Origin: Anthoceros angustus
Taxonomy: Eukaryota; Plantae; Anthocerotophyta
Length of the DNA stretch: 64,000 nt
NCBI GenBank assembly: GCA_010909165.1
Contig: MU008199.1
Location: 266,248-330,247 of the forward strand
Reading direction: 5' to 3'
In this document: one piece after another, positions 27,965 to 61,695 of the stretch
Numbering within the stretch: position 1 is the stretch's first letter
Layout: each line of letters opens with the position of its first letter
Translations under genes and position numbers: made by a program
The notes under the pieces: model-generated
Databases searched by the model: none
What the model was told of the DNA's origin: nothing
What the model saw: only the letters and a program-made list of their open reading frames with translations

Positions 27965-30900
27965 ATGGTCACAGTGTGGGAACCGGACTCATTGTGGACC
28001 CAACAAATTGGTGTGTGTACAGGTATTCGACGAGGAGCTCCCGCCCACCTCATCCCCGGGAGTCAACCCCTGGCAAACAACCAAGCCTCTGTGTTCAGCA
28101 GTGTAAGCAGCCTAGCACTCCCACTTCCGCTGAAATCTGTGGGTGGGGACGGATTTTCCAACGATGTTGGTCGCCAGGGGCAGGAGTTTTCTCTGGACCC
28201 TACCGTGTGGTGGGAGAACAGACGAGATAAGAAGAGCTCCCGTTCGCCCGACTTCCGGCGTAAGGAGTCCGGCTAGGTCCTGTGGTTTGACGGCATGCTC
28301 AAGCCAGCTTGGGTTGATGAGCATCTCGTTTCTTTGGATATGCAGATGGGTCATGTGCCTCTCCTGCCAAGTCGAGCTCTCCGAATAAGCTTGCACCTGG
28401 CAGGCGTGGAAGATTGGGATTGGGACTGTGAGCATGTTATGTCAGCAGGGGAAGCTTTCTGAGGCCGTTGGAGCCCTGGAATCTCTGGCGCAGACAGATC
28501 ACTGCTGTTTCTCAGTCTCTGTTGTACACTGTGCTAAACCTGTGTGCATGAAAGAAGGATTTGGTTGCGGGGCGACGAGTCCATGATCTCACTGGCAAAC
28601 TTGGGTACGAGTCGAATGCATACTTGGGGAACCATATCTTGCGCATGTATGCATGTGGAGGTAGGCCAGAGGAGGCCATGGATGCGCTCAGCAGGGTGGG
28701 CAAACCAGATGCCTTCATGTGGTCTTCCATAATCTTCACATGCGCAAAGCATGGGACACTTATTGAGGCCATACAGCTGTACCATAAATTGCGTAGATCA
28801 GGAGTGAAGGCGGATGCTCACGTCCTTGTTTCTGCCCTCCAAGCTTGTGCATCTGCCGCTGACTTGGAATCTGGTAGAAAAGTGAACCTGTGATGTGATG
28901 CAGAGTGGCATTTCTACTAACTTGTTTGTTGGCAACTGCCTGGAGGACATGTATGCTAAATGTGGCGAACTCAAAGATGCAGGCCAGGGTTTTGACAGCA
29001 TGACCACCAAGGATGTGGTGACATGGAATGCCCTGATATCTGGGTGTGCAAAATGTGGTGAACTGAAAGATGCACGCCACGTTTTTGACAGCATCGCCGC
29101 AAAGGATGTGGTGACGTGGAATGCCCTGATTGCTTGGTATGTGGAGCAAGGGCTTGGACCTGAGGCGCTTGTTGTGTATGAACAAATGGGGCAGATTTTG
29201 GCTGACCATGTTACTTTTGGTTGCGTTCTGAAGGCCTGTACAAGCACTGGTGCCTTACAGAAGAGCAGGCAGCTGCACTCACTGATTGTCGAAAGAGACT
29301 GCTGGATAACGTAAAGGTGGGCTACTACCTTGTGGACTTGTATGCAAAATGTTGCGAACTGAAATATGCACGCCAGGTTTTTGACAGCATGGCCACCAAG
29401 GATGTGGTGACATGGAATGCTCTGATATCTGGGTCTGCAAAATGTGGTGAACTGAACCTTGACAGCATAAACACAAAGAATGTGGTGACATGGAATGCCC
29501 TCATAGCTGGGTATGTCGAGCAAGGGCTCGAACATGAGGCACTTGTTCTGTATGTACAAATGGAGCAAGAGGGGCTGATTTTGGCTGACGCTGTTACTTT
29601 TGCTTGCCTTCTGATGGCCTGTGCAAGCACTGGTGCCTTGCAGAAGGGCAGGCAGCTGCACTCACTGATTGTTGACAGAGGACTGCTGGATAACGGAGTG
29701 TTGGGCAACTCCCTGGTGGACAGGTTTGCAAAATGTGGTGAACTGGAAGATGCACGCCAGATTTTTGACAGCTAACCCTCAAAGGATGTGGTGACCTGGA
29801 ATGCCCTGATAGCTGGGTATGCACAGCAAGGACTCAGCCAAGAGGTGCTTGTTCTGTATGGACAAATGGAGCAAGAAGGCCTCATTTTAGCTGACCATCT
29901 TACTTTTGCTTGCCTTCTGAAGGCCGGTGGAAGCAAGGGTTCCTCTCAGAAGGGCAGGCAGCCATACGTGCAGATTGTTGAAAGAGGATTGCTACATGAT
30001 GTACTGGTGGGCACCTGCCCGGTGGACATGTAAGCTAAACGTGGTGAACTGGAAGATGCTCGCTGGGTTTTTGAAAGCTTGGCCACAAAGGATGTGGTGA
30101 CGTGGATGGCGTTGATTGCTGGGTATGCACAGCAAGAACTCGGCCAGGAGGTGCTTGTTCTGTACGGACTAATGGAGCAAGAAGGCGTCGTTTTGCAAAT
30201 CATGTTACTTTTTCTTGCCTTCTAATGGCCTGTGGAGGCACTGGTGCCTTACGGAAGGGCAGGCAGCTGCACTCACAGATTGTGGAAAGAGGACTGCTGG
30301 GCAGCGTGGTGTTGGGCACCTGCCTGGTGGACATATATGCAAAATGTGGTGAGCTGAAAGATGCACGCCAGGTTTTTGACAGCATGAACACAAAGAATGT
30401 GGTAACATGGATGGCGTTGATTGCTGGGTATGCACAGCAAGAACTCGCCAGGAGGTGCTTGTTCTGTACGGACTAATGGAGCAAGAAGGCGTCGTTTTGC
30501 AAATCATGTTACTTTTTCTTGCCTTCTAATGGCCTGTGGAGGCACTGGTGCCTTACGGAAGGGCAGGCAGCTGCACTCACAGATTGTGGAAAGAGGACTG
30601 CTGGGCAGCGTGGTGTTGGGCACCTGCCTGGTGGACATATATGCAAAATGTGGTGAGCTGAAAGATGCACGCCAGGTTTTTGACAGCATGAACACAAAGA
30701 ATGTGGTAACATGGAATGCCCTGATATCTGTGTATGGTAGTCGTGATTATGGTCAGAGAGCACTAGCTTGTTTTGAGGAGATGTTAGTTGCCGGCAATCG
30801 ACCTGATGGTGCTATTTTTGCTGGCCTTCTAGTTGCATGCAGTCATGAGAGACTGGTGGATGAGGGTCACAAGCACTTTGATTCCATGGCTGAACACCAT

Positions 30901-31506
30901 GGCATCAAACCTACAACGGAGCATTACAATTGCATGATTGATCTTGTTGGGCGTGCAGGCCATTTAGAGGAGGCTGCGAACATACTCTTTTCATGTGAGG
31001 GCCAGAGTGATGTTGTGGGACGTCTTTGTTGAATGCCTGCAAAAGTGACGGGGATATAGACAGGATATAGAGAGGGCGATGCGATGTTTTGAAAGCATCG
31101 TTAGGCTCAACCATCTTAGCGGGCGTCTGTATGTGCGCATGGCCAATGCTTGGGCGGATGCAGGTAGGTGGACCGATGTAGACTGGATCGAAACACAGAG
31201 CATGGTAGCAGGAGCTTACAAGAAACCTGCAGTAGTGAGCATTGTGGCGAAGAACGAGGGACATATGTTTGCAGTAAGAGAGACGAGATGACATTGCGCT
31301 AATGGTAGAGAGAACGAATGCACGTTTGATGAAGCAGGAAGGAGGGCATGTACCCCACACAAAGCTGGGATTGAAGCCATTGTCTGAGAAGGAAAAGGAA
31401 GATGTGCTTTGTGGGCATGCTGAGAAACCAACAGAGACATTGTTGGGATGGGTACCGCGTGCTTCGATTCGCAAATGGCGGTTGCAGTTGTAAGGGTCGA
31501 CCGTGA
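27965..31506 (+). pseudogene. PDF-motif / PLS-PPR / DYW:KP (GRP) pseudogene (copy psi)
   Basis: Same architecture as its neighbours, but with substitution stops (TAG 28274, TGA about 28891, TAA 29773, TAA 30031). It has an internal tandem duplication of about 305 nt (about 30103/30408) and a deletion removing LALAY...CxxCH between HAEK and RDIV. It ends ggtcgaccgTGA (GRP*). Confidence 0.85.
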
Positions 31507-31947
31507 GAAAGGAGGACAATCGAGTGCCCACGTGTGTAGGCCAGAGAATACATAGTGCTTTTTTTCTTGGGGGGTGAAAGTGCTTTCTTGATGCCATCCC
31601 TGCCCAAACAGAAACACGGACATGGATGGCTATTAACACTGATCCACCTCTCGTCATAACAGAGATGGGCAAAATCCCATGAGTTTCTCTTTCCGGGATG
31701 AAGAATTTCAGACTGATAATAGTGAACAGAGCGTCAACTAAGCATATGGACGTGACAACCAAGCAGCTTCCCGTCCAACAAGTGGACGACACAACTTCAC
31801 GTGGTGTTTGCTGTCGTGGGTGATGCACATTTAGATAGTGCAGTGCAAACTTATATATGTACGTACATTCATGGTCATCCCCACACGGTCTTGTCCAGTG
31901 TCCAGTTTGTTCTGGGTCTCTCATCCTCCGAAAGCGGTATCTGTAAG

Positions 31948-34900
31948 ATGGCCACAGTATGGCAACCAGATCCGGTACGTGCCCAACCAATCGGGGCGTG
32001 TACAGGTGTGCGACGAGGAGCTCCCGCTGTCCTTACTTCAGGGAGTCAGCCGCAGGCAAACAACGAAGCCTCAAGGTACAGCAGTGTAAGGAGCCCAGCA
32101 TCACCCAGAAAATCTTTGGCTGGGGAAGGATTGTCCACCGAAGGTCGTCGTCAGGAGCTGGAGCTCTTGTGGAAACAATTTTTTCTGGACCCTACAATGT
32201 GGTGGGACAACAGACGAGGTAAGAAGACATCCCGTTCGCCGGACTTCCGGCGTAAGGGGTCCGGCGAGGTGCTCTGGTTAAACAACTCTTCGAAGCCAGC
32301 TTGGGTGGATGAGACTCTGTGTGTTTTGGATATGCAGATGGATCACGGTGCCTCTACTCCCAATTTGAGCGTAAGCGGTAGGCCGGAGGCAGACAGGCCT
32401 GCAGGAGCCGAATTGGACGTAACGGCTATAACCGTGAGCACATTATGTCATCAAGGGAAGCTTACGGAGGCCGTCGAAGCCCTGGAATTTCTGGTGCAGA
32501 CAGACGGTGGTATTTCTCAGTCTCTGCTTTACATTGTGCTGAAACTGTGTACAGCTAAGAAGGATGTGGTTGTTGGACGACGAGTTCATGATCTTACTAT
32601 CAAACTTGGGTACGAGTCAACTACGTACTTGGGGAACCATATCTTGCGCATGTATGCATGTGCAGGTAGATTACAAGAGGCCATGGATGTGTTCACTAGG
32701 GTGGGCAAACCAGACGTGTTCATGTGGGTTTCCATAATTTCTGCACACGCTAAACATGGGAAACCTTATGAGGCCATACAACTGTACCATGACTTCCGTG
32801 CCTCAGGTGTGAAGGCTAATTCTCATGTCTTTGTAGCTGCCCTTCAAGCTTGTACATTTGCCTCCGACTTGGAATCTGGCCGAAAAGTGCACTCTGATCT
32901 GTTGCGGAGTGGCATTCCTCCTAACTTGTTTGTTGGCAACTGCTTGGTGGGACTGTATGCAAAATGTGGCGAACTAGAAGATGCACGCCTGGTTTTTGAC
33001 AGCTTGGGCACAAGGGATTCAGTCACCTGGACCGCCCTTATAGCTGGTTATGCAAATCATGGGTTTGGTGAAAAGGCGCTGGTTCTGCATGGACAAATGG
33101 AGGAGGAGGGCCTGATTTTGGGCAACCCTGTTACCTTGGCTTGTCTTTTGAAGGCCTGTGCAAGCACTGGTGACCTGGAGAAGGGCAGGCAGCTGCACTC
33201 ACAGATTATGGAAAGAGGACAGCTGGATAGTCTACTGGTGGGGACGTGCCTGGTGGACATGTATGCAAAATGTGGCGAACTGGAAGATGCACGCCAGGTT
33301 TTCGACAGCTTAAGCACAAAGGATGTGGTGACGTGGACGGCCCTCATAGCTGGCTATGCAAATAATGGGCTCGGTCAAGATGCACTCATCCTGTATGGAG
33401 AAATGGAGCAAGAGGGCCTGATTTTGGGTAATCATGTTACTTATTCTTGCCTTCTGAAGGCCTGTGCAAGTACTGGTGCCCTACAGAAGGGCAGGGAGTT
33501 GCACTCCCAGATTGTTGAAAGAGGACTACTGCACAACGTACGGGTGGGCACCTGCCTTGTGGACATGTATGTAAAATGTAGCGAACTGGAAGAGGCACAC
33601 AGCGTTTTCAACAGATTGTCGACGAAGAATGTGGCAACATGGACGGCCCTGATAGCTGGGTATGCACAGCAAGGGCTCTGTCAAGAGGCACTTGGTCTGT
33701 ATGGACAAATGGAGCAAGAGGGCCTGATTCTGGCTGACTCTGTTACATTTTCTTGCCTTTTGAAGGCCTGTGCCAGTGCTGGTGCCTTACAAGAGGGCAG
33801 GCAGCTGCACTCACAGATTGTGGAAAGAGGGCAGCTGAATAACGTGCGGGTGAGCACCTGCCTGGTCGACATGTATGCAAAATGTGGCGAACTGGAAGAT
33901 GCTTGCGGGGTGTTTAACAGTTTGGCCACAAAAGATGTGGCGACATGGACAGCCCTGATAGCTGGGTATGTACAGCAAGGGTTCTGTCAAGAGGCGCTTG
34001 TTCTGTATGGGCAGATGGAGGAGGAGGGCCTGATTGTTGCTGACAGTGTTACTTTTGCTTGCCTTCTGAAGGCCTGTGCAAGCGCTGGTGCCTTGCAAGA
34101 GGGCAGGCAGCTGCACTCCCAGATAGTTGAAAGAGGTCAGCTGGAGAGGGACATGCAGGTGGGCACCTGCCTCGTAGACATGTACGGGAAATGTGGCGAA
34201 CTAGAAGAAGCACGCAGGGTCTTTGACAATTTGGCTGCAAAAGATGTGGCGACATGGACAGCCCTGATAGCTGGATATGCACAAAAAGGCCTCTTGACAG
34301 AGGCAATGGTTCTATATCGAGAAATGGAGGGGGAGGGCCTGATACTTGCTGACTCTGTAACTTTTGCTTGCCTTCTGAATGCCTGTGCCGGCGCCGGTGC
34401 CTTACAAGAGGGCAGGCAGCTGCACTCACGGATTGTGGGAAGAGTAGAGCTAGAAAGGGACATACTGGTGGGCAACTGTCTGGTGGACATGTATGCAAAG
34501 TGTGGCGAACTGGAAGATGCACGGAGGGTTTTTGACAGTTTGGCCAGAAAAGATGTGGTGACATGGAATGCCCTGATAGCTGGGTATGGTACTTCTGATG
34601 AAGGTCACAATGCAGTAGCCTGTTTTGACGAGATGGTAGTTGCTGGTATTCAGCCTGATGAAGCTACTTTTACTTGCCTTTTAGTAGCATGTGGCCATGA
34701 GGGACTGGTAACGGAGGGTCGGAAGCTCTTCGATGCCATGGTAGAGCAGCATGGCATCAAACCTACTATTCAGCATTACAACTGCATGGTTGATCTTCTT
34801 GCACGTGCAGGCCATTTAGATGAGGCAGAGAACATGTTGTTGTCATGTGAGAGCCAAGACGATGTTGTAGGGTTGATGTCTTTGCTAAATGCCTGCAAAA

Positions 34901-36821: not shown

Positions 36822-39800
36822 ATGGGCACAGTATTGCAACCAGATCCGGTATGGTCGCGACCAATTGCTGGGTGTACAGGAATTGTAAAAGGAGATACCG
36901 CTCGCTTCACTTTAGGGACCCAGACGGTAGCGCCTAAGGATGCCTCGAGGTGCAGCAGTGTCAGGAACCCAGGACTGCGGAGGAAATCCATGGCTGGGGA
37001 AGTACCCGCCGACGGTCGTCGGCAGGAGCTGGAGCTCTTGTGTCGACAGTTTTTCTGGACCCTACCATGTGGTGGGACAACAGGCGAGGTGAGAAGAGTT
37101 CCCGTTCGCCTGACTTCCGGCGGAAAGGGTCCGGCGAGATCCTCTGGCTAGACAACTCTTCCAATCCCGCTTGGGTGGATGCTCAGCTCGGTGCTCGATA
37201 TGCATATCGGTCATGCTGCCTCCTTCCAAGTCGTGTATTTCCGACAAGCCTGAGCCTCGGAGGCCTGCTGGATCAGAAATGAGCGTAACAGCTGTAACCG
37301 TGAGCACGTTATGTCAGCAAGGAAGCTTACCGAGGCCGTTGTAGCCCTGGAAGAGTTGGCGGAGACATACTTTCCTATTTCTCAGTCTCTGTTGTATACT
37401 GTTCTGAAACTGTGTGCAGCAAAGAAGGATTTGGTTGTGGGGCGACGAGTTCATGATCTCACTGTCAAACTTGGGTATGAGTCGAATACGTACTTGGGAA
37501 ACCACATTTGCGCATGTATGCCTGTGGAGGTAGGTTACAAGAGGCCATGGATGTGTTCACCAGAGTGGGGAAACCCGATGCCTTCATGTGGGGTTCCATG
37601 ATCTCCGCACATGCTAAACACGGAAAGCCTAATGAGGCCATACAACTATACCATGAAATGTGCAGCTCTGGGTGAAACCGGATGCTCACGTCTTTGTAGC
37701 TGCCTCCAAGCTTGTGCACTTGCCACGGACATGGAATCTGGCACAAAGTGCACTCTGATGTGTTGCAGAGTGGCATTCCTCCTAACTTGTTTGTCGGCAG
37801 CTGCCTGGTGGACATGTATGCAAAATGGCGAACTGGAAGGTGCACGCCAGGTGTTTGACAGCTTGGCCACAAGGATGTGGTGACCTGGACGGCCCTGATA
37901 GCTGGGTATGCAAATCATGGGCTCAGTCAAGAGGCGCTTGTACTGTATGAACAAATGGAGCAACAGGGCCTGATTCTGAGTAACCCTGTTACGTTTGCTT
38001 GCCTCCTGAAGGCTTGTGCAAGCACTGGTGACCTGGAGAAGGGCAGGCAGCTGCACTCACAGATTGTGGAAAGAGGAGAGCTAGAACGTGATATATTGGT
38101 GGGGACGTGCCTGGTGGACATGTATGCAAAATGTGGCGAACTGGAAGATGCACGCCAGGTGTTTGACAGCTTGGCCACAAAGGATGTGGTGACATGGACG
38201 GCCCTGATAGCTGGGTATGCAAATCATGGGCTCGGTGAAGAGGCGCTTGTCCTGTATGGAGAAATGGAGCAAGAGGGCCTGATCTTGGGTAACCATGTTA
38301 CTTATTCTTGCCTTCTGAAGGCCTGTGCTAGCACTCGTGCCTTATGGAAGGGCAGGAGCTGCACTCACAGATTGTGGAAAGAGGAGAGCTACAAAATGAC
38401 ATACTGGTGGGCACCTGCCTGGTGGACATGTATGTAAAATGTGGCGAACTGGAAGGTGCACGCCAGGTGTTTGACAGCTTGGCCACAAAGGATGTGGTGA
38501 CATGGACGGCCCTGATAGCTGGGTATGCACAGCAAGGGCTCTGTCAAGAGGCGCTTGTTCTATATGGACACATGGAGCAAGAGGGCCTGATTCTGAGTAA
38601 CCCTGTTACGTTTGCTTGCCTTCTGAAGGCCTGTGCAGTGCTGGTGCCTTACAGAGGGCAGGCAGCTGCACTCACAGATTGTGGGAAGAGGGCTTCTAGA
38701 TAATTTACTGGTTGGCACCTGCCTTGTGGACATGTATGCAAAATGTGGCGAACTGGAAGATGCGCGCCGGGTGTTTGACAGCTTGGCCACAAAGGATGTG
38801 GTGACATGGACAGCCCTGATATCTGGTTATACACAGCAAGGGCTTGGTGAAGAGGCGCTTGTTCTGTATGGACACATGGAGCAAGAGGGCCTGATTCTGA
38901 GTAACCCTGTTACGTTTGCTTGCCTTCTGAAGGCCTGTGCTAGCACTCGTGCCTTACAGAGGGCAGGCAGCTGCACTCACAGATTGTGGGAAGAGGTCTG
39001 CTAGATAACATAGTGGTGGGCACCTGCCTGGTGGACATGTATGCAAAATGTGGCGAACTAGAAGATGCACGCCAGGTGTTTGACAGCTTGGCCACAAAGG
39101 ATGTGGTGACATGGACAGCCCTGATAGCTGGGTATGCACAGCAAGGGCTCTGTCAGGAGGCGCTTGTTCTATATGGACACATGGAGCAAGAGGGCCTGAT
39201 CTTGGGTAACCATGTTACTTTGCTTGCCTTCTGAAGGCCTGTGCTAGCACTCGTGCCTTATGGAAGGGCAGGAGCTGCACTCACAGATTGTGGGAAGAGG
39301 TCTGCTAGATAACATAGTGGTGGGCAACTGCCTGGTGGACATGTATGTAAAATGTGGTGAACTAGAAGATGCACGTAGGGTTTTTCAGAGCTTGACCAGA
39401 AAGGATGTGGTGACATGGAATGCCCTAATAGCTGGGTATGCACAGCAAGGGCTCTGTCAGGAGGCGCTTGTCCTGTATGCCGAAATGGAGCGGGCGCCTT
39501 ATTTTGGCAAATCATATTACTTTACGTGCCTTCTGAAGGCCTGTGCTAGCACTCGTGCCTTACACGAGGGCAGGCAGCTGCACTCACAGATTGTGGAAAG
39601 AGGAGAGCTAGAAAGGACATACTGGTCTGCAACTGCTTGTTGGACATGTATGCAAAATGTGGCGAACTAGACGATGCACAGGTGTTTGACAGCTTGGCCA
39701 CAAAGGATGTGGTGACATGGACGGCCCTTATAGCTGGGTATGCAAATCATGGGCTCGGTGAAGAGGCGCTTGTTCTATATGGACACATGGAGCAAGAGGG

Positions 39801-41223
39801 CCTGATCTTGGGTAACCATGTTACTTTCGCTTGCCTTCTGAAGGCCTGTGCTAGCACTCGTGCCTTATGGAAGGGCAGGAGCTGCACTCACAGATTGTGG
39901 GAAGAGGTCTGCTAGATAACATAGTGGTGGGCAACTGCCTGGTGGACATGTATGTAAAATGTGGTGAACTAGAAGATGCACGTAGGGTTTTTCAGAGCTT
40001 GACCAGAAAGGATGTGGTGACATGGAATGCCCTAATAGCTGGGTATGCACAGCAAGGGCTCTGTCAGGAGGCGCTTGTCCTGTATGCCGAAATGGAGGCG
40101 GCCTTATTTTGGCAAATCATATTACTTTACGTGCCTTCTGAATGCTTGTGCGTGCCTTACACGAGGGCAGGCAGCTGCACTGCAGATTGTGGAAAGAGGA
40201 GAGCTAGAACGTGATATATTGGTGGGGAACTGCCTGGTGGACATGTATGCCAAGTGTGGCGAACTGGAAGATGCACGTAGGGTTTTTGACAGCTTGGCCA
40301 CAAAAGATGTGGTGACATGGAATGCCCTGATAGCTGGGTATGGTACTTGTGATGAAGGTCACAACGCCTTAGCTTGTTTTGAGGAGATGATAGTTGCTGG
40401 TATGGAGCCTAATGATGCTACTTTTACTTGCCTTTTAGTAGCATGTGGCCATGAGGGACTGGTAACGGAGGGTCGGAAGCTCTTCGATGCCATGGTAGAG
40501 CAGCATGGCATCAAACCTACTATTCAGCATTACAACTGCATGGTTGATCTTCTTGCACGTGCAGGCCATTTAGATGAGGCAGAGAACATGTTGTTGTCAT
40601 GTGAGAGCCAAGACGATGTTGTAGGGTTGATGTCTTTGCTAAATGCCTGCAAAAGTCACGGGGACATGGAGAGGGCAACTCGGTGTTTTGAAACCATTGT
40701 TAAACTGGACCCTCAAGGGGCATCCGCATATGTGCTCATGGCAAATGTCTATGCAGATGCAGGTATGTGGGCAGATGTAGAGAGAATTGAAAAAAGGAGA
40801 ATGGTAGCAGGAGCTAGGAAGAAACCTGCAGTGGCAGGCATTGAGGTAAATGAGCAGGTACATACGTTTGTGGTGGGAGAAAACAGAGATGATCTCTCGC
40901 TCAAGGTAGAGACCATGAGCGCACGGCTGAAGGAAGAAGGGGGCCACGTACCACACACCAAGCTGGTGTTGAAGCAACTGTCTGAGAAGGAAAAGGAAGA
41001 TGCGCTTTGCGGGCATGCTGAGAAGCTAGCGTTGGCGTATGGTCTCTTGAATACTCCAAGCGGCACACCTCTGATGGTAACGAAGAATCTACGAATGTGC
41101 AGTGACTGCCACACGTCGACTGAGATCATGTCTAGGGTTGAAAAAAGAGACATTGTTGTAAGGGATGGATACCGTGTGCATCGATTCGCAGCTGGTTGTT
41201 GCAGCTGCAAGGGTCGACCGTGA
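36822..41223 (+). CDS. Gene B: PDF-motif / PLS-PPR / DYW:KP (GRP); about 8 internal triplets; 5' half matches gene C, 3' end matches gene A; many apparent frameshifts
   Basis: ATG 36822 (MGTVLQPDP) as in gene C. The frameshifts are 1-2 nt losses in homopolymers and no substitution stops were seen. ORF 40045-41223 carries a complete E1-E2-DYW:KP. May be functional, a pseudogene or partly misassembled. Confidence 0.65.
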
Positions 41224-42619: not shown

Positions 42620-45600
42620 ATGGGCACAGTATTGCAACCAGATCCGGTATGGTCGCGACCAATTGCTGGGTGTACAGGAATTGTAAAAGGAGATACCGCT
42701 CGCTTCACTTTAGGGACCCAGACGGTAGCGCCTAAGGATGCCTCGAGGTGCAGCAGTGTCAGGAACCCAGGACTGCGGAGGAAATCCATGGCTGGGGAAG
42801 TATTACCCGCCGACGGTCGTCGGCAGGAGCTGGAGCTCTTGTGTCGACAGTTTTTTCTGGACCCTACCATGTGGTGGGACAACAGGCGAGGTGAGAAGAG
42901 TTCCCGTTCGCCTGACTTCCGGCGGAAAGGGTCCGGCGAGATCCTCTGGCTAGACAACTCTTCCAATCCCGCTTGGGTGGATGCTCAGCTCGGTGCTCGA
43001 TATGCATATCGGTCATGCTGCCTCTCCTTCAAGTCGTGTATTTCCGACAAGCCTGAGCCTCGGAGGCCTGCTGGATCAGAAATGAGCGTAACAGCTGTAA
43101 CCGTGAGCACGTTATGTCAGCAAGGGAAGCTTACCGAGGCCGTTGTAGCCCTGGAAGAGTTGGCGGAGACATACTTTCCTATTTCTCAGTCTCTGTTGTA
43201 TACTGTTCTGAAACTGTGTGCAGCAAAGAAGGATTTGGTTGTGGGGCGACGAGTTCATGATCTCACTGTCAAACTTGGGTATGAGTCGAATACGTACTTG
43301 GGAAACCACATTTTGCGCATGTATGCCTGTGGAGGTAGGTTACAAGAGGCCATGGATGTGTTCACCAGAGTGGGGAAACCCGATGCCTTCATGTGGGGTT
43401 CCATGATCTCCGCACATGCTAAACACGGAAAGCCTAATGAGGCCATACAACTATACCATGAAATGTGCAGCTCTGGGGTGAAACCGGATGCTCACGTCTT
43501 TGTAGCTGCCCTCCAAGCTTGTGCACTTGCCACGGACATGGAATCTGGCACAAAAGTGCACTCTGATGTGTTGCAGAGTGGCATTCCTCCTAACTTGTTT
43601 GTCGGCAGCTGCCTGGTGGACATGTATGCAAAATGTGGCGAACTGGAAGGTGCACGCCAGGTGTTTGACAGCTTGGCCACAAAGGATGTGGTGACCTGGA
43701 CGGCCCTGATAGCTGGGTATGCAAATCATGGGCTCGGTCAAGAGGCGCTTGTACTGTATGAACAAATGGAGCAACAGGGCCTGATTCTGAGTAACCCTGT
43801 TACGTTTGCTTGCCTCCTGAAGGCTTGTGCAAGCGCCGGTGACCTACAGACTGGCAGACAGCTGCACTCACAGATTCTGGGAAGAGGAGAGCTACAAAAT
43901 GACATACTGGTCTGCAACTGCTTGTTGGACATGTATGCAAAATGTGGCGAACTAGACGATGCACGACAGGTGTTTGACAGCTTGGCCACAAAGGATGTGG
44001 TGACATGGACGGCCCTTATAGCTGGGTATGCAAATCATGGGCTCGGTGAAGAGGCGCTTGTTCTATATGGACACATGGAGCAAGAGGGCCTGATCTTGGG
44101 TAACCATGTTACTTTCGCTTGCCTTCTGAAGGCCTGTGCTAGCACTCGTGCCTTATGGAAGGGCAGGGAGCTGCACTCACAGATTGTGGGAAGAGGTCTG
44201 CTAGATAACATAGTGGTGGGCAACTGCCTGGTGGACATGTATGCAAAATGTGGCGAACTAGACGATGCACAGGTGTTTGACAGCTTGACCAGAAAGGATG
44301 TGGTGACATGGAATGCCCTAATAGCTGGGTATGCACAGCAAGGGCTCGGTGAAGAGGCGCTTGTTCTATATGGACACATGGAGCAAGAGGGCCTGATCTT
44401 GGGTAACCATGTTACTTTCGCTTGCCTTCTGAAGGCCTGTGCTAGCACTCGTGCCTTATGGAAGGGCAGGGAGCTGCACTCACAGATTGTGGGAAGAGGT
44501 CTGCTAGATAACATAGTGGTGGGCAACTGCCTGGTGGACATGTATGTAAAATGTGGTGAACTAGAAGATGCACGTAGGGTTTTTCAGAGCTTGACCAGAA
44601 AGGATGTGGTGACATGGAATGCCCTAATAGCTGGGTATGCACAGCAAGGGCTCTGTCAGGAGGCGCTTGTCCTGTATGCCGAAATGGAGCGGGGCGGCCT
44701 TATTTTGGCAAATCATATTACTTTTACGTGCCTTCTGAATGCTTGTACAATTGCCGGTGCCTTACACGAGGGCAGGCAGCTGCACTTGCAGATTGTGGAA
44801 AGAGGAGAGCTAGAACGTGATATATTGGTGGGGAACTGCCTGGTGGACATGTATGCCAAGTGTGGCGAACTGGAAGAAGCACGCAGGGTTTTCGACAGTT
44901 TATCCGCCAAGGATGTGGTGACATGGAATGCCCTGATAGATGGGTATGGTACTTGTGATCAAGGTCACAACGCCTTAGCTTGTTTTGAGGAGATGATAGT
45001 TGCTGGTATGGAGCCTAATGATGCTACTTTTACGTGCCTTTTAGTAGCATGCGGTCACAAGGGACTGGTGAATGAGGGTCGAAAGCACTTCGATGCCATG
45101 GTTGAACACCATGGCATCAAACCCACTGTTCAGCATCACAATTGCATGATTGATCTTCTAGGGCGTGCAGGCCATTTAGATGAGGCAGAGAACATGCTAT
45201 TATCATGTGACAGCCAGAACAACGTTGTGGGATTGACTTCTTTACTGAATGCCTGCAAAAGTCATGGGGATATAGAGAGGGCGACTAGGTGTTTCGAAAG
45301 TCTTATAACACTGGACCCTCAGCGGGCATCCTCATACGTGCTTATGGCCAATGTCTATGCAGATGCAGGGAGGTGGACAGATGTAGACAGGATTGAAAGA
45401 CAGAGGATGGTAGCAGGAGCTAGGAAGAAACCTGCTGTGGCGGGCATTGAGGTAAAGGAGCAGGTACATACGTTTGTGGTGGGAGAACACAGAGATGATA
45501 TCTCGCTCAAGGTAGACAGCATGAATGTACGTCTGAAGGAGGAGGGCGGCCATGTACCTCACACAAAGTTGGTGTTGAAGCCACTGTCTGAGAAGGGAAA

Positions 45601-45829: not shown

Positions 45830-45834
45830 GAATG

Positions 45835-48186: not shown

Positions 48187-50781
48187 TCACGGTCTACCCT
48201 CGCAACTGCAAGAACCAGCTGTGAATCGATGCACGCGGTACGCATCCCTCACCACGATGTCCCTCTTTTCAACCCTTGACATGATTGCAGTGGAAGTGTG
48301 GCAGTCACTACACATGCGGAGATTCTTCGTTACCAGCAGAGGTGTGCCGCTCGGAGTTTTCAAGAGGCCGTACGCCAGAGCTAGCTTCTCAGCATGCCCA
48401 CAAAGTGCATCCTCCTTTTCCTTCTCAGACAATGGCTTCAACACCAATTTTGTGTGTGGTACATGGCCCCCTTCCTGCTTCAGACGTCCATTCACACTCT
48501 CTACCTTGAGAGAAATATCGTCCCTGTTTTCTCCTACCACAAATGTATGTATTTCCTCCTCTACCTCAATGCCTGCCACTGCAGGTTTCTTCTTAGCTCC
48601 TGCTGTCATTCTCTGTCTCTCAATCCTCTCTACATCTGTCCACCTCCCAGCATCTGCATACCCATTGGCCATGAGCACATATGCAGATGCACCCTGAGGG
48701 TCAAGTCTAACAAGACTTTCAAAACACCGTGTCGCCCTCTCCATATCCCCGTGACTTTTGCAGGCATTCAGCAACGACGTCAACCCCACAACATTGTTTT
48801 GACTCTCACAAGATAATAGCATGCTCTCTGCCTCATCTAAGTGGCCTGCACGCCCCAGAAGATCAATCATACAGTTGTAATGCTGAAGAGTAGGTTTCAT
48901 GCCATGCTGTTCAACCATAACATCGAAGTGCTTGCGCCCCTCGTACACCAGTCCCTCATGCCCACATGCTACAAAAAGACAAGTAAAAGTAGCATCATCG
49001 GGCTGAATACCAGCCACCAACATCTCCTCAACAAGCTAGTGCTTTCCTACCTCCATCACAACTACCATAACCAGCTATCAGGGCATTCCATGTCACAACG
49101 TCCTTAGTGGCCAAGCTGTCAAAAACCCGGCGTGCATCCTCCAATTCGCCACATTTTGCATACATGTCCACCAGGCCAGTGCCCACCAGTGCGTTATCTA
49201 GCTGTCCTCTTTCCACAATCTGTGAGTGGAGCTGCCTGCCCTTCTGCAAGGCACCAGCGCCAGCACAGGCCTTCAAAAGGCAAGCATAAGTAACATGGTT
49301 ACCCAAAATCAGGCCCTCTTGCTCCATTTGTCTATAGAGAACCAGCGCCTCTTGATCGAGGCCTTGGTTTGCATACCCTGCTATCAGGGCAGTCCATATC
49401 ACAACATCCTTTGTGGCCAAGCTGTCAAAAACTGTACGCGCGTCTTCCATTTCACCACATTTTGCGTACATGTCCACCAGGCAGGTGCGCACCAGTGTGT
49501 TATCTAGTTCTCTTCTTTCCACAATCTCTGAGTGCAGCTGCCTACCTTTCTGCAAATCACCAGCGCTCGCACAGGCCTTCAGAAGGCAAGACACAGTAAC
49601 AGGGTTAGCCAAAATCCGATCCTCTTGCCCCATTCGTTCATACAGTCCAAAAACCTCATCACTGAGCCCATGATTTACATAACCAGCTATGAGAGCATTC
49701 CACGTCACCACATTTTTTGTGGTCAAGCTGTCAAATACACGCCGTGCATCTTTCAGTTGTCCACATTTTGCATACATGTCCACCAGGCAGCTGCCAACAA
49801 ACAAGTTAGGAGAAAGGCCACTGTGCAAGACATCATAGTGCACTTTCCTGCCAGATTCCAGGTCGGCGGCAAATGCGCAAGCTTGAAGCGCAGCTACAAA
49901 GACATGAGCATCCGGCTTCACCACTGAGCTACGCATCTCGTGGTACAGTCGTATGGCCTCATTAGGTTTCCCATGCTTAGCATGGGCAGAGATTATGGAA
50001 AACCACATGAAGGCATCTGGTTTGCCCACCCTGGTGAACACATCCATGGCCAATTGTAACTCACCTACACCTGCATACATCCGCAATATATGGTTCCCCA
50101 AGTACGTATTCGACTCGTATCCCAGATTGATAATGAGATCATGAACCCGTCGCCCCACAACCAGATTCTTCTTAGCCGCGCACAGTTTCAGTATAGCATA
50201 AAACAGAGACTGAGAAACAGGACAGTCCCCCTGCGCCAGAAATTCCAGGGCGGCGACGGCCTCACTGAGCTTCCCTTGCTCACATAACGTGCTCACGGTT
50301 TCAGGAGTTATGCCCATGTCGGATCCTGCAGGCCTGCCAGGCTCAGGCTTACCTGAAACGCTCGACTTCGACGTAGAGGCACCATGCCCCATCCGCATGT
50401 CCAAAGCAACGAGCTGCTCATCCACCCAAGCTGGATTGGAGGAGTTGTCTAACCAGAGGACCTCACCAGACCCTCACGGCGGAAGTCAGGCGAACGGGAG
50501 CTCTTCTTATCTCGCCTGTTATCCCACCACATGGTAGGGTGAAGAAAAAACTCTCGCCACAAGCGCTCCAGCTCCTGGCGACGATCGTCGCTGGATAATG
50601 CCTCCCCAGCCATGTATTTCCTCCGCAGTGCTGAGTTCATCACCCTCCTCCACCTCGAGGCTTCGTTGCTTGCCAGCGGCTGCCTGCTGAAAGTGCGGCG
50701 TGCGGGAGCTCCTGATAGACTCCCCGCACACCCACCAATTGGTTGAGTCCATAACGGATCCGGTTGCCATATGGTGGTCAT
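48187..50781 (-). CDS. Gene D: PDF-motif / PLS-PPR / DYW:KP protein ending GRP; shortest copy (2 internal triplets)
   Basis: ATG 50781 (MTTIWQPDP). Three ORF pieces are joined by a missing G (about 50472) and missing TT (about 49030), both in homopolymers. Motifs KKPAVAGIEV, HAEK, CSDCH, CEGRP*. Confidence 0.87.
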
Positions 50782-53747: not shown

Positions 53748-56700
53748 ATGGCCACAGTATGGCAACCGGATCCGTCATGGACCCAACCAATTGGTGGGTG
53801 TGCAGGAGTCCACCAGAGCTCGCGCACGCCTCACTTTCAGCAGACAGCCGCTGGCAAACAACGAAGCCTCGAGGTGGAGCAGGGTAATGAGCTCAGCACT
53901 GCGGAGGAAATACATGGCTGGGGAGGCATTCTCCAGCGACGATCGTCGCCAGGAGCTGGAGCGCTTGTGGCGAGAGTTTTTTCTTCACCCTACCATGTGG
54001 TGGGATAACAGGCGAGATAAGAAGAGCTCGCGTTCGCCTGACTTCCGCCGCGAGGGGTCTGGTGAGGTCCTCTGGTTAGACAACTCCTCCAATCCAGCTT
54101 GGGTGGGTGAGCAGCTCGTTGCTTTGGACAGGCGGATGGGCCATGGTGCTTCTACGTCGAAGTCGAGCTTTTTGGGTAGGCCCGAGCCTGGCAGGCCTGC
54201 AGGATACGACATGGGCATAACTCCTGAAACCGTGAGCACGTTATGTGAGCAAGGGAAGCTCAGTGAGGCCGTCGCCGCCCTGGAATTTCTGGCGCAGGGG
54301 GCCTGTCCTGTCTCTCAGTCTCTGTTTTATGCTGTACTGAAACTGTGCGCCAGAAAAAAGAATCTGGTTCTGGGGCGACGAGTTCATGATCTAACTATCA
54401 ATCTGGGATACGAGTTAAATACGTACTTGGGGAACCATATATTGCGGATGTATGCAGGTGCAGGTGAGTTACAATTGGCCATGGATGTGTTCACCAGGGT
54501 GGGCAAACCAGATGCCTTCATGTGGTTTTCCATAATCTCTGCATATGCTAAGCATGGGAATCCTAATGAGGCAATACAACTGTACCACGAGATGCATAGG
54601 TCAGGGGTGAAGCCAGATGGTCACGTCTTTGTAGCTGCCCTTCAAGCTTGTGCATTTGCCAATGACTTGGAATCTGGCAGAACTGTGCACTCTGATTTCT
54701 TGCGCAGTGGAATTCCTCTGAACTTGTTTCTAGGCAGCTGCCTGGTTGACATGTATGCAAAATGTGGCGAACTGGAATATGCACGGCAGGTATTTGACAG
54801 CTTGCCCACAAAAAATGTTGTTACATGGAATGCTCTCATAGCTGGGTATGCAAATCATAGGCTCTTTCAAGAGGCGTTTATTCTGTATAGAGAAATGGAG
54901 CAAGAGGGCCTGGTTCTGGCTGATAATGTTACTTTTGCTTGCCTTCTGAAGGCCTGTGCAAGCTCTTGTGCTTTAGTAGAGGGCAGGCAGCTGCACTCAC
55001 AGATTTTGGAAAGAGGGCACCTAGAAAGTGACATATTGTTGGGCAACTGCCTAGTGGACATGTATGCGAAATGTGGCGAACTGGAAGTTGCACACATGGT
55101 TTTTGAGAGCTTGGCCACTAAGGATGTCGTCACATGGACCTCCCTTATAGCTGGGTATGCAAATCATGGGCTTTTTCAAGAAGCACTTCTTCTATATGGA
55201 CAAATGGAGCAAGAGGGCCTGGTTCTGGCTGATAATGTTACTTTTGCTTGCCTTCTGAAGGCCTGTGCAAGCTCTTGTGCTTTAGTAGAGGGCAGGCAGC
55301 TGCACTCACAGATTTTGGAAAGAGGGCACCTAGAAAGTGACATATTGTTGGGCAACTGCCTGGTGGACATGTATGCAAAATGTGGCGAACTGGAATATGC
55401 ACGCAGGTATTTGACAGCTTGCCCACAAAAATGTTGTTACATGGAATGCTCTCATAGCTGGGTATGCAAATCATAGGCTCTTTCAAGAGGCGTTTATTCT
55501 GTATGGACAAATGGAGCAAGAGGGCCTGGTTCTGGCTGATAATGTTACTTTTGCTTGCCTTCTGAAGGCCTGTGCAAGCTCTTGTGCTTTAGTAGAGGGC
55601 AGGCAGCTGCACTCACAGATTTTGGAAAGAGGGCACCTAGAAAGTGACATATTGTTGGGCAACTGCCTAGTGGACATGTATGCGAAATGTGGCGAACTGG
55701 AAGTTGCACACATGGTTTTTGAGAGCTTGGCCACTAAGGATGTCGTCACATGGACCTCCCTTATAGCTGGGTATGCAAATCATGGGCTTTTTCAAGAAGC
55801 ACTTCTTCTATATGGACAAATGGAGCAAGAGGGCTTGAGTTTGGGAAATCATATTACGTTTGCTTGCCTTCTTAAGGCCTGTGCAAGCGATGGTGCCTTA
55901 GAGAAGGGCAGGGAGTTGCACTCACAGATTGTGGAAAGGGGACTGCTAGATAACATACTGGTGGGCAACTGCCTGGTGGACATGTATGCTAAATGTGGCA
56001 AACTGGAAGATGCATGCAGGGTTTTTGACAGTTTGCCCAGAAAAAATGTGGCGACATGGACGGCTCTAATAGCTGGCTATGCACAGCAGGGTCTCCCCAG
56101 AGGCTATTGGCCTGTATGGACAAATGGAGCAAGAGGGCCAGATCCTAGCTGACAGCGTTGCTTTTTCTTGCCTTTTGAGGGCATGTGCAAGTGCCGGTGC
56201 CTTGCAAGAGGGCAGGCACCTGCACTCTCAGATTCTGGAAAGAGGTCAGCTGCAAAGTGACATGCTGGTAGGGAACTGCTTGGTAGACATGTATGCAAAA
56301 TGTGGCGAACTCGAAGATGCTCGCCAGGTCTTTGATAGCTTGGCCTTGAAAGATGTGGTGACATGGACGACCCTTATAGCAGGGTATGCTCAGCAAGGGC
56401 CCTGTCAGGAGGCGTTGGTTCTGTATCGTCAAATGGAGCAGGAGGGGCTGATTCTGGCTGACGCTGTTACTTTTTCTTGCCTTTTGAGGGTATGTGCAAG
56501 TGCTGGTGCCTTACAAGAGGGAAGAGAACTGCACTCACAGATTGTGGAAAGAGGTCAGTTAGACAGTGACATACAATTGGGCACGTGCCTGGTGGACATG
56601 TATGCGAAATGTGGTGAATTAGAAGATGCACGTCGGGTGTTTGACAGTTTAGCATCAAGAGATGTGGCGACATGGACGGCCCTGATATCTGGCTATGGTA

Positions 56701-57575
56701 CTTGTGATGAAGGTCACAATGCCCTTGCCTGTTTTGAGGAGATGTTAGTTGCTGGTGTTCAGCCGGATGATTCTACTTTGACCTGCGTTTTGGTAGCATG
56801 TGGTCATGAGGGGTTGGTGACTGAGGGTCGCAAGCACTTCAATGCCATGGAACAGCAGGGCATCAAACCTAATATTCAGCATTACAATTGCATGATTGAT
56901 CTTCTTGCACGAGCAGGCCATCTAGATGAGGCGGAGAACATGCTATCATCATGTGAGAGCGAAGGCAATGTCGTGGGGTTGACGTCTTTGCTATATGCCT
57001 GCAAAAGTCATGGGGATATAGAGAGGGCAACCCGGTGCTTTGAAAGTCTTGTAAGACTGGACCCTCAGGGTGCATCCGCGTATATGCTTATGGCCAATGT
57101 GTATGCCGATGGTGGTAGGTGGACAGATGCAGAGAGGATTGAAAGACAGAGAATTATAGCTGGAGCCAAGAAGAAACCTGCAGTAGCAGGCATTGAGGTC
57201 AAGAAGGAGGTACATACGTTTGTGGTGGGAGAATACAGAGATGATATCTCGCTCAAGTTAGAGAGCATGAGAGTATGTCTGAAGGAGGCAGGGGGCCACG
57301 TACCGCAGACAAAGTTGGTTCTGAAGCCACTGTCTGAGAAGGAAAAGGAAGATGCGCTTTGTGGGCATGCTGAGAAGCTAGCTCTGGCATATGGTCTCTT
57401 GAATACTCCAAGTGGCACACGTCTGCTGGTAACGAAGGATCTACGAATGTGCAGTGACTGCCACAGTTCCACCGAAATCATGTCGAGGGTTGAAAAGCGA
57501 GATATTGTTGTAAGGGATGGTTACCGTGTGCATCGATTCGCAGCTGGTTGTTGCAGTTGTAAGGGTCGACCGTAA
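53748..57575 (+). CDS. Gene E: PDF-motif / PLS-PPR / DYW:KP protein ending GRP (6 internal triplets)
   Basis: Homologous start MATVWQPDP at 53748 (alternative ATG at 53722). PDF motif 53950-54117. Frameshifts at about 53805, 55405-55430 and 56090 are short-run deletions. ORF 56079-57575 has a full E1-E2-DYW:KP. Confidence 0.85.
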
Positions 57576-57589: not shown

Positions 57590-58015
57590 CTGTGGACTTG
57601 AATCATGCATTTGGTACGAAGGTGACCAACAACCGAGAGGAAGCGGAAAATGGAATCCAAGGCGTGTTGGCGGCCGCTTCCAAGTGGCCTGACCCGTCCA
57701 AGAAGGTCCACGATTTCCAGTGCTCGAGTGTGGGAGTGATGCCATGTCTGTCCGCCGTTGCGGTTAACTGCTTTCTGCCCTCTTGTGCCAGACCCACATG
57801 ACTGCAGGCCACCAGTTGGGCTCAACGTATGGTGCCGCACCATTGTTTTGTTGGCCATAGCCAGCACAGTTTGCCCTATTCCTTTCACCTTTATCCGAGA
57901 AGAAAGGTCTGAAATCTAAGGTGTCTTCGGTATGTCTTGGGTCTTCACTCCGCACTTGATGCTCAAAGGAATGCCAAATGCCTCGCCAACGCAACTCAAG
58001 ACTTCGAGCTGAGTG
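57590..58015 (-). mobile_element. Possible decayed LINE 3' fragment (zf-RVT-like); a related short piece lies at about 51480-51580
   Basis: RWRGIWHS...NCAGYG...WWPAVMWVW pattern. gcggaaaatggaatc(c)aaggcgtgttgg is shared between 51541 and 57643. Confidence 0.3.
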
Positions 58016-58635
58016 TATGACAATGGACCCGGATCACTTTTAATCGTCCTTCCTTATCTGCCATCAAATACTGTGAATTGTAGCAAGCGTGAAACGTTCG
58101 TCAAGTGTTGTGCATATTTCCAATCCTCTGTGCTTGATCCTTCCCTTCCCAACCCACCTTATCCCTGATGGATTTCAAACCTGCACCCTCAAATGGAAGA
58201 TTATCTTGTAGCCGTCTCACTCTTTTAGCGATGAGAACTCTACTGGGTTAGTGGAATGCTTTTGACAAGAAAATTCTTTGTAGCTGCCCTCAAGCTTGTG
58301 CACTTGCCACGGACATGGAATGCCCTGATAGCTGGGTATGCAAAATGTGGTGACATGGAATCTGGCACAAAGTGCACTCTGATGTGTTGCAGAGTGGCAT
58401 TCCTCCTAACTTGTTTGTCGGCAGCTGCCTGGTGGACATGTATGCCTGTGGAGGTAGGTTACAAGAGGGCAGGCAGCTGCACTCACAGATTCTGGGAAGA
58501 GGTCTGCTAGATAACATAGTGGTGGGCAACTGCCTGGTGGACATGTATGCCTGTGGAGGTAGGTTACAAGAGGGCAGGCAGCTGCACTCACAGATTGTGG
58601 AAAGAGGAGCTCTCGGCTACTTCAGTTTAGGAGTC

Positions 58636-61600
58636 AACCGCTGGTAAACAACGAAGCCTCGACGTGCAGCAGTGTCAGGAACCCAGGACTGCGGAGGAAA
58701 TCCATGGCTGGGGAAGTATTACCCGCCGACGGTCGTCGGCAGGAGCTAGAGCTCTCGGACCGGCAGTTCTTTCTGGACCCTACCATGTGGTGGGACAACA
58801 GGCGAGGTGAGAAGAGTTCCCGTTCGCCTGACTTCCGGCGGAAAGGGTCCGGCGAGATCCTCTGGCTAGACAACTCTTCCAATCCCGCTTGGGTGGATGC
58901 TCAGCTCGGTGCTCGGGATATGCATATCGGTCATGCTGCCTCTCCTTCCAAGTCGTGTATTTCCGACAAGCCTGAGCCTCGGAGGCCTGCTGGATCAGAA
59001 ATGAGCGTAACAGCTGTAACCGTGAGCACGTTATGTCAGCAAGGGAAGCTTACCGAGGCCGTTGTAGCCCTGGAAGAGTTGGCGGAGACATACTTTCCTA
59101 TTTCTCAGTCTCTGTTGTATACTGTTCTGAAACTGTGTGCAGCAAAGAAGGATTTGGTTGTGGGGCGACGAGTTCATGATCTCACTGTCAAACTTGGGTA
59201 TGAGTCGAATACGTACTTGGGAAACCACATTTGCGCATGTATGCCTGTGGAGGTAGGTTACAAGAGGCCATGGATGTGTTCACCAGAGTGGGGAAACCTG
59301 ATGCCTTCATGTGGTTCTCCATAATCTCCGCATATACTAAACACGGAAAGCCTAATGAGGCCATACAACTATACCATGAAATGTGCAGCTCTGGGGTGAA
59401 ACCGGATGCTCACGTCTTTGTAGCTGCCCTTCAAGCTTGTGCACTTGCCACGGACATGGAATCTGGCACAAAGTGCACTCTGATATCTTCAACAGTGGCA
59501 TTCCTCCTAACTTGTTTGTCGGCAGCTGCCTGGTGGACATGTATGCAAAATGTGGCGAACTGGAAGATGCACGCCAGGTGTTTGACAGCTTGGCCACAAA
59601 GGATGTGGTGACATGGACGGCCCTGATAGCTGGGTATGCACAGCAAGGGCTCTGTCAAGAGGCGCTTGTTCTATATGGACACATGGAGCAAGAGGGCCTG
59701 ATTCTGAGTAACCCTGTTACGTTTGCTTGCCTTCTGAAGGCCTGTGCAAGTGCTGGTGCCTTGCAGAAGGGCAGACAGCTGCACTCACAGATTGTGGAAA
59801 GAGGAGAGCTACAAAATGACATACTGGTGGGCAACTGCCTGGTGGACATGTATGCAAAATGTGGTGAACTAGAAGATGCACGCCAGGTTTTGACAGTTTG
59901 GCCACAAAAATGTGGTGACATGGACCACCCTTATAGCTGGGTATGCAAATCATGGGCTCGGTGAAGAGGCGCTTGTTCTATATGGACACATGGAGCAACA
60001 GGGCCTGATCTTGGGTAACCATGTTACTTTTACTTGCCTTCTGAAGGCCTGTGCAAGCTGGCGCTTTACAGGAGGGCAGGCAGCTGCACTCACAGATTGT
60101 GGAAAGAGGAGAGCTAGACAGTGACATACTGGTCTGCAACTGCTTGTTGGACATGTATGCAAAATGTGGCGAACTAGATGCACGACAGGTGTTTGACAGC
60201 TTGGCCACAAAGGATGTGGTGACATGGACGGCCCTTATAGCTGGGTATGCAAATCATGGGCTCGGTGAAGAGGCGCTTGTTCTATATGGACACATGGAGC
60301 AAGAGGGCCTGATCTTGGGTAACCATGTTACTTGCCTTCTGAAGGCCTGTGCTAGCACTCGTGCCTTATGGAAGGGCAGGGCACACTCACAGATTGTGGA
60401 AGAGGTCTGCTAGATAACATAGTGGTGGGCAACTGCCTTGTGGACATGTATGCAAAATGTGGCGAACTAGAAGATGCACGTAGGGTTTTCAGAGCTTGAC
60501 CAGAAAGGATGTGGTGACATGGAATGCCCTAATAGCTGGGTATGCACAGCAAGGGCTCTGTCAAGAGGCGCTTGTCCCATGCCGAAATGGAGGCGGGCCT
60601 TATTTTGGCAAATCATGTACTTTTACGTGCCTTCTGAATGCTTGTACAATTGCGGTGCCTTACAAGAGGGCAGGCAGCTGCACTGCAGATTGTGGAAAGA
60701 GGGAGATATATTGGTGGGGAACTGCCTGGTGGACATGTATGCAAAATGTGGCGAACTGGAAGATGCAGGTTTTTGAGCTTTATCCGCCAAGGATGTGGTG
60801 ACATGGAATGCCCTGATAGATGGGTATGGTACTTGTGATCAAGGTCACAAAGCACTTTCCTGTTTCGAGGAGATGATAGTTGCTGGTATGGAGCCTAATG
60901 ATGCTACTTTTTGCCTTTTAGTAGCATGCGGTCACAAGGACTGGTGAATGAGGGTTGGAAGTACTTCGATGCCATGGTTGAACACCATGGCATCAAACCT
61001 ACTGTTCAGCATCACAATTGCATGATTGATCTTCTTGGGCGTGCAGGCCATTTAGATGAGGCAGAGAACATGCTATTATCATGTGACAGCCAGAACAACG
61101 TTGTGGGATTGACTTCTTTACTGAATGCCTGCAAAAGTCATGGGGATATAGAGAGGGCGACCCGGTGTTTTGAAAGTCTTGTTGCATTGCACCCTCAGGG
61201 GCATCCGCATATGTGCTCATGGCCAATGTCTATGCAGATGCAGGAGGTGGACAGATGTAGACAGGATTGAAAGACAGAGGATGGTAGCAGGAGCTAGGAA
61301 GAAACCTGCAGTGGCAGGCATTGAGGTAAAGGAGCAGGTACATACGTTTGTGGTGGGAGAACACAGAGATGATATCTCGCTCAAGGTAGACAGCATGAAT
61401 GTACGTCTGAAGGAGGAAAGGGCCACGTACCTCACACAAAGTTGGTGTTGAAGCCACTGTCTGAGAAGGAAAGGAAGATGCGCTTTGCGGGCATGCTGAG
61501 AAGCTAGCTCTGGCGTATGGTCTCTTGAACACTGAGTGGCACTCCTCTGCTGGTAACGAAGAATCTACGCATGTGCAGTGACTGCCACAGTTCGACCGAA

Positions 61601-61695
61601 ATCATGTCAAGGGTTGAAAAGAGACATTGTGGTGAGGGATGCGTACCGTGCATCGCTTTACAGCTGGTTCTTGCAGTTGTAATGGTCAACCATGA
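58636..61695 (+). pseudogene. Copy F: near-duplicate of gene C (PDF / PLS-PPR / DYW:KP, GQP end); 5' end replaced by scrambled PPR pieces; many indels
   Basis: PDF motif 58740-58907. Ends aatggtcaaccaTGA at 61695. No start codon is visible and the indels are homopolymer-type, so its true status is uncertain. Confidence 0.65.

Follow-up and report, generated by a model that had tools for sequence, protein, structure and literature searches.

A family of PPR-DYW:KP genes in Anthoceros angustus with an OSB-type PDF module, by sequence and predicted fold, ahead of the first repeat

Editing factors of the pentatricopeptide repeat (PPR) family are described as a targeting peptide followed by repeats and an E/DYW C-terminus. 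Two kinds of described protein lie closest to the present case. The PDF motif of OSB1 alone suffices for binding of single-stranded DNA (ssDNA) (PMC6963530, PMC6451138). The GRP proteins are a hornwort subgroup of the DYW:KP proteins, whose hallmarks are those seen in the domains below (PMC9478123, PMC11845758); designer GRP proteins that lack a PDF module carry out U-to-C editing (PMC9478123), and natural DYW:KP proteins are not yet shown active (PMC11845758). Here we analysed 64,000 nucleotides from the hornwort Anthoceros angustus (assembly GCA_010909165.1, contig MU008199.1, positions 266,248 to 330,247; the window). At 27965-61695 the window contains seven PLS-PPR genes in tandem, six on the plus strand and one (D) inverted. 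All seven copies have a PLS-PPR-DYW:KP architecture of the GRP type with an OSB-type PDF module ahead of the first PPR.

The module and the genes that carry it

A hidden Markov model (HMM) was trained solely on 167 PDF repeats of OB-fold (OSB-like) proteins and run on the six-frame translation of the window. Six modules scored 44.6-60.1 bits and that of D was recovered in two frameshifted pieces, whereas the best other match in the rest of the 64 kb six-frame window reached -0.9 bits. In a phmmer search of 1.84 billion representatives, the module had 497 matches at E ≤ 0.001; an OSB3-like protein was named among the top matches, and an OB-like domain was present in 70 of the 150 best. For fold comparison we used an AlphaFold2 model of the module of gene C, a confident helix, small sheet and helix (predicted local distance difference test score, 86.5). 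In Atlas, where both sides of the comparison are predicted, the model matched an OSB1 cluster with a template modelling (TM) score of 0.84 (root-mean-square deviation 1.2 over 61 residues) and three PPR/DYW clusters (57-127 members) with TM scores of 0.85-0.92.

A preliminary description of this DNA, made from the letters alone, had placed the module in all seven copies, had read it as the OSB PDF motif and had proposed an HMM from OSB PDF motifs and an AlphaFold comparison as checks. All seven modules are present at the coordinates given there, and both comparisons match. By sequence and predicted fold, the module is an OSB-type PDF motif, a stretch of about 50 aa marked by W-x-D-x-R and P-D-F; an artefact or chance match was rejected on the strength of the HMM scores, the phmmer matches and the fold match. 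Foldseek and VIA found no significant match among solved or viral structures to the plant model or to that of the phage form described below. When 142 PDF sequences were compared with Pfam, PHROGs and PDB sequences, no family was matched; Mycobacteriophage gp49 (PF25690) had an Atlas feature score of 0.84, under the Atlas bar of 0.9, and was likewise without a Pfam match to the 142 sequences. In the window proteins, Pfam recognised PPR, E_motif and DYW_deaminase, with P, L and S anchors recurring about every 103 amino acids (aa), and no OB/SSB domain was matched. Among the 150 best matches, OB and PPR occurred together in none. The genes and their modules are as follows.

27965..31500 (end approximate), plus strand: psi, a decayed PDF-PLS-E-DYW:KP copy; module with a stop and a 15-nt deletion, DYW truncated
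28181..28327, plus strand: PDF module of psi, degenerate; 44.6 bits
31948..35460, plus strand: gene A; 68-aa N-terminus, PDF, PLS array and E1-E2 open to 35133
32152..32319, plus strand: PDF module of A; 60.1 bits, every near-invariant residue retained
36822..41223, plus strand: gene B; numerous single-base deletions, the longest PLS array, DYW:KP intact and ending GRP
37023..37189, plus strand: PDF module of B; 51.6 bits, 1-nt deletion in a T run near the module start
42620..45829, plus strand: gene C; single open frame, 1069 aa
42824..42991, plus strand: PDF module of C; 53.6 bits, predicted helix, small beta sheet, helix
45428..45826, plus strand: DYW:KP domain of C; 133 aa, KP box, HAE at 65, Lys88, CxxC
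48187..50781, minus strand: gene D, inverted copy; module with a 1-nt deletion, frame broken ahead of the E domain, GRP-ending DYW:KP
50411..50577, minus strand: PDF module of D; two pieces (30.9 + 8.2 bits) on either side of a frameshift near 50473
53748..57575, plus strand: gene E; N-terminus and PPR array frameshifted, GRP-ending DYW:KP
53950..54117, plus strand: PDF module of E; 59.6 bits, every near-invariant residue retained
58581..61695, plus strand: gene F, near copy of C; many single-base indels
58740..58907, plus strand: PDF module of F; 52.5 bits

Gene C thus encodes, in order, a putative targeting peptide (~68 aa), the PDF module, a linker, a PLS array, E1-E2 and a DYW:KP domain ending in GQP. 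The DYW domains of B, C, D and E, which the preliminary description had called DYW:KP, are 133 aa long with the KP box at the start, HAE at 65 and Lys at 88; those of B, D and E end in GRP. These hallmarks bear out the assignment: on sequence, the window proteins are DYW:KP proteins of the GRP subgroup, as would be expected of a hornwort nuclear genome, and U-to-C editing by them is putative.

The module is under purifying selection. Its amino-acid identity was 0.85, compared with 0.59 in both the N-terminus and the linker. Among copies A, C, D and E, the ratio of non-synonymous to synonymous substitution rates (dN/dS) was 0.19 for the module (95% confidence interval 0.10-0.36), 0.77 for the leader, 0.50 for the linker and 0.34 for the first PPRs. 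Better conservation than in the flanks, as noted earlier from the letters, is therefore confirmed by both measures. The 68-aa leader, a putative targeting peptide, is rich in Ser, Thr and Arg and fast-evolving. Invariant Arg and Lys residues, together with several conserved aromatics, characterise the module; those of C, B and F have substitutions at conserved sites.

Only C is open from the ATG to the end of DYW. A is open through E2; just before its DYW:KP (GRP) domain, 2 nt are lost in an AG run, and the domain continues in other frames. B, D, E, F and psi each have several frameshifts. The breaks are mostly single-base losses, many of them within short runs. Frameshifts also fall inside the modules of B and D, and the psi module has a stop codon. 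Compared with A, D, E, F and psi, the linker of C has a -2/-1 pair of indels that compensate each other. F is 94.6% identical to C over 4.3 kb, with 92 gap positions. We compared the window with short-read contigs over three mostly non-coding stretches near the genes. The best-matching sample showed 0 substitutions and 4 (45781-46100), 6 (42389-42875) and 9 (41178-41707) gap positions. Since the contigs differ from the window by gaps only, the assembly is indel-prone, and many of the frame breaks, as a class, are probably assembly errors. psi looks truly decayed, because of its stop, its longer deletions and a dN/dS relaxed to 0.51 in the module.

These data bear on the possibility that the module is a relic, an OSB-derived 5' cassette of targeting peptide and PDF that was captured once and copied along, with little function or cut off at import. 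Six of the seven copies are interrupted in the assembly, much of the family arose by recent duplication, and conserved sites are substituted in C, B and F, all of which would suit a relic. The gap-only differences, however, point to assembly error, the dN/dS of the module contrasts with 0.5-0.8 in both flanks, and the motif is kept in moss, lycophyte, fern and hornwort proteins. We regard a relic as improbable.

Among the runs guessed to be RNA, one supplied a contig that matches 42491-42876 (leader, ATG and module start of C) without any difference or gap, and two are thin or empty across much of the intergenic stretch. This coverage fits transcription of C, although contigs cannot prove transcription. 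At 42941, a DNA run reached a summed depth of ~735, compared with 9-12 in unique contigs; a depth of this kind does not give a copy number, but it suggests that the genome holds tens of similar copies. The genes appear intronless from the ATG onward.

Degenerate second E-E+/DYW-start fragments lie directly 3' of C (45861-46232) and F (61723-62047) and were duplicated along with them. Small PPR fragments are found between E and F at 57666-57815 (minus strand) and 58360-58596 (plus strand); the latter looks like a short internal repeat and may reflect mis-assembly. Elsewhere in the window, a short open reading frame at 3487-3678, within the tandem duplication 2763-3943 / 3932-5085, encodes WVLDGCAGS, resembling the S-adenosylmethionine-binding motif of amino-methyltransferases. 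Another, at 6933-7727 in the repeat-rich first 22 kb, encodes two gag-like CxxC-x4-H-x4-C knuckles and had no Pfam match.

Relatives of the module in plants, phages and bacteria

Ten of the 150 top matches were PDF-PPR proteins from elsewhere (Diphasiastrum, Sphagnum, Adiantum, Pteridium and others). When a moss module was searched against long proteins, 32 clusters were obtained, 3 from Ceratodon and 29 from Diphasiastrum, and all were PPR proteins. Most of them end in a DYW domain with a PG-type box, and HSE where legible; the rest are E-class or truncated. Most fusions have one PDF copy per protein and some have two or three. Because the linker from PDF to the first repeat varies from ~12 to more than 40 aa, the PDF is suggested to be a tethered domain. 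A fusion specific to KP was rejected, as the same module sits on DYW:PG, E-class and other PPR proteins of mosses, a lycophyte and ferns. The special coupling of PDF to U-to-C catalysis that had been read from the window does not hold for the same reason, the fusion being common on DYW:PG (mosses, lycophyte), E-class and truncated PPR proteins. Judged from these sequences, the fusion has a long history and is independent of U-to-C editing. A tree of 62 columns and 76 rows neither supported nor refuted a single origin of the PPR-fused modules. With C's own module as an exact-word query no homologue was found, a result uninformative on absence since the hornwort variant shares too few words.

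The distribution also bears on the proposal that the PDF brings the PPR-DYW:KP protein to organellar ssDNA for modification, which we consider highly improbable. We know of no programmed DNA editing of plant organelle genomes. The same module is present on ordinary DYW:PG proteins and on PPR proteins without a catalytic domain, and GRP designer proteins act on RNA. What speaks for DNA as the substrate is that designer PPR arrays can bind ssDNA, according to work cited in PMC9508816, and that bacterial DYW-like deaminases act on ssDNA (e.g. PMC12494967).

Five dinoflagellate proteins, P0002 (Effrenium voratum), P0013 (Cladocopium), P0014, P0016 and P0017, consist of a leader and 7-10 PDF repeats in tandem; no OB fold or PPR was detected in them. 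The plastids of dinoflagellates contain minicircle genomes and edit their RNA heavily, and these proteins may bind minicircles or transcripts. In P0050 (1526 aa) and P0042 (1063 aa), OSB-like N-terminal halves are joined to a kinesin or a long coiled coil; both are probably merged gene models.

A tblastn search with the moss PDF found nothing in GenBank phages and IMG/VR, and the prokaryotic form was reached only with a degenerate DNA pattern (WDNR, 3-8 free codons, PDFK). The pattern yielded 49 phage loci, all in frame and with exactly 8 residues between the two blocks, which is the spacing of 114 of the 150 OSB repeats. These eight free residues, which lie outside the pattern, scored p < 5e-5 on an OSB-derived matrix in nearly all distinct cases. 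Four cysteines frame the core in 42 of the 49 loci, ERF-like proteins account for 36 and an SSB-like acidic PF tail is present in 40. In three phage loci (L026, L029 and L032) the PDF is zinc-free, with a plant-like N-terminal helix, and scored 42-43 bits; the L026 protein is flanked by genes for an exonuclease/WhiB and a DnaB-like helicase. In L026 (1798-2520), L029, L032 and L006, the zinc-free plant-like PDF lies at the C-terminus of a protein with an unclassified N-terminal domain.

Bacterial genomes matched at 120 loci or more, mostly in Gemmatimonadota; 61 of 120 cluster with a Pfam Rad52 protein and others are stand-alone double-motif proteins. Among the Gemmatimonadota loci, L051, L085, L087, L106, L121, L159, L160 and others encode proteins of ~180-200 aa that have a pair of zinc-PDF motifs plus an acidic DDDLPF tail and that, as far as sequence goes, look like an OB-less SSB.

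Plant and phage profiles aligned with an hhalign probability of 98.6%, a value partly built in by the search pattern, and the two models have the same strand order and final helix. The Atlas structure search also matched phage proteins, with TM scores of 0.66-0.71, and gave a weak match to a Rad52 cluster of Gemmatimonadota (TM 0.43). Against zf-GRF and topoisomerase C4 zinc ribbons, the zinc form gave weak generic zinc-ribbon matches, the best (VIA, Z 3.3) to a topoisomerase I chain. Given the link to ERF/Rad52 tails, the "plant-specific" PDF motif is likely to be of prokaryotic origin, the direction from prokaryote to plant being the simpler reading.

If the module acted as a nucleoid tether, it would, like the OSBs, bind organellar ssDNA (transcription bubbles, R-loops or replication intermediates) and hold the editor there, and nascent transcripts would be edited co-transcriptionally. 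ssDNA is the only ligand shown for PDF, and all nameable prokaryotic partners are ssDNA annealases. Among solved structures, the topoisomerase I zinc-ribbon region comes closest to the phage zinc form, but the match is weak, with a Z score within noise. Moreover, most fusions have a single PDF, whereas OSB2 is a tetramer and OSBs have one to several PDFs. A tether of this kind is the chief alternative to the reading favoured below, yet seems to us somewhat unlikely.

The SSB-like acidic end bears on yet another reading. In this case, the Trp-rich module would dock on OSB, SSB, RNA polymerase or another PPR protein, or cap and stabilise the first repeats, and nucleic-acid binding would be incidental. 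The annealase modules lie in the C-terminal tail beside that end, and the region of an SSB-like acidic tail often recruits partners. Heterologous expression of PPR editors also depends on the N-terminal make-up (PMC9508816). Yet the invariant Arg and Lys and the conserved aromatics fit nucleic-acid binding, which was shown directly for OSB1. We therefore hold a docking or folding module to be unlikely.

A proposed role for the module

We tentatively favour the reading that the module, on a flexible tether, binds single strands irrespective of sequence and so adds avidity on the target RNA or keeps the RNA open. The module would stay on the mature protein after import, and its Trp/Phe and Arg/Lys residues would contact single-stranded nucleic acid of any sequence. 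By gripping the transcript 5' of the PPR footprint, it would increase avidity or keep the target unfolded, with the PPR array setting the site and DYW the chemistry. This reading draws on the ssDNA binding of the OSB1 PDF, on identified partners (OSBs, ERF, Rad52) that handle single strands, and on the OSB-only HMM match, the TM scores of 0.84-0.92 and the dN/dS of 0.19. The module would moreover be a built-in helper in lineages without the MORF cofactors of seed plants, since the fusions were seen only in seed-free plants and MORFs only in seed plants. According to a 2026 survey, MORFs are seed-plant-only (PMC13386178); that the seed-free limit of the PDF fusions mirrors this limit is offered only as a lead.

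Several points weigh against a single-strand binder on RNA. The published activity of PDF is on ssDNA and concerns OSB1, from which RNA binding by a PPR-fused PDF would be an extrapolation. Designer GRP proteins edit without the module, so it is dispensable for catalysis (PMC9478123). In C, the sole open-frame copy, two near-invariant residues of the module are changed (W11C and K28E). Finally, the absence of a PDF-PPR fusion from seed plants rests on exact-word-limited searches, in which none was found.

A wider scheme, in which a zinc-ribbon-derived module of phage and bacterial annealases entered plants, became the OSB PDF and was then fused to a large share of the PPR editors of seed-free plants, tying them, the hornwort U-to-C enzymes among them, to nucleoid ssDNA or nascent RNA and partly replacing MORF/ORRM in cis, is doubtful as a whole. 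If it were true, natural DYW:KP proteins would need the module for full activity, and the module could improve designer editors. Should many moss, lycophyte, fern and hornwort editors carry it, this would bear on editing without MORFs, on the nucleoid link of editing and on why natural DYW:KP proteins are not yet shown active. In the heterologous PPR56 construct, at least, only 14 residues are retained before the first repeat (PMC10482289), so that a folded N-terminal domain would be trimmed unnoticed.

Full-text literature searches, with Zaegel 2006, Gerke 2020 and Gutmann 2020 outside their reach, returned no paper on the PDF-PPR fusion or the annealase link. This agrees with the preliminary description, which knew of no characterisation of the fusion. 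The 2026 survey of domain fusions in editing factors mentions OSB 0 times (PMC13386178). New from this locus are one open-frame copy, evidence of an indel-prone assembly and the prokaryotic relatives of PDF.

Comparison with known systems

Fusions of RRM or MORF with PPR (PMC13386178) likewise place an accessory domain on a PPR editing factor, but they are rare and involve known editosome cofactors, unlike the PDF fusion. Phage ERF (PF04404) and bacterial Rad52/Rad22 (PF04098) have a C-terminal CxxC-WDNR-x8-PDFKC-C tail with the core and spacing of the plant PDF and a similar spacer. Here, four Cys ligands replace the plant N-terminal helix, and the partner is an annealase rather than a PPR protein. 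OSB proteins share the PDF motif with the window modules by sequence (45-60 bits) and predicted fold (TM 0.84); they have an OB fold and one to four C-terminal PDFs, whereas the window proteins lack the OB fold and have one N-terminal PDF joined to PPR-DYW.

The same N-terminal PDF and PLS-PPR array are found in proteins deposited as hypothetical: KAG0592855.1 of Ceratodon, CAM6033764.1 of Sphagnum, KAJ7558666.1 of Diphasiastrum with about 30 further clusters, and the PDF-PPR protein KAI5061374.1 of Adiantum. These moss, lycophyte and fern fusions end in a canonical C-to-U DYW (HSE...DYW), are E-class or are truncated, in contrast to the DYW:KP of the window. The GRP-type designer proteins KP2/KP3 (PMC9478123) have, like the window proteins, a PLS array, E1-E2 and a 133-aa DYW:KP with KP box, HAE, Lys88, CxxC and a GRP/GQP end. 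The published GRP descriptions and the designer proteins begin at the first PPR, whereas the window proteins have a conserved PDF module ahead of it.

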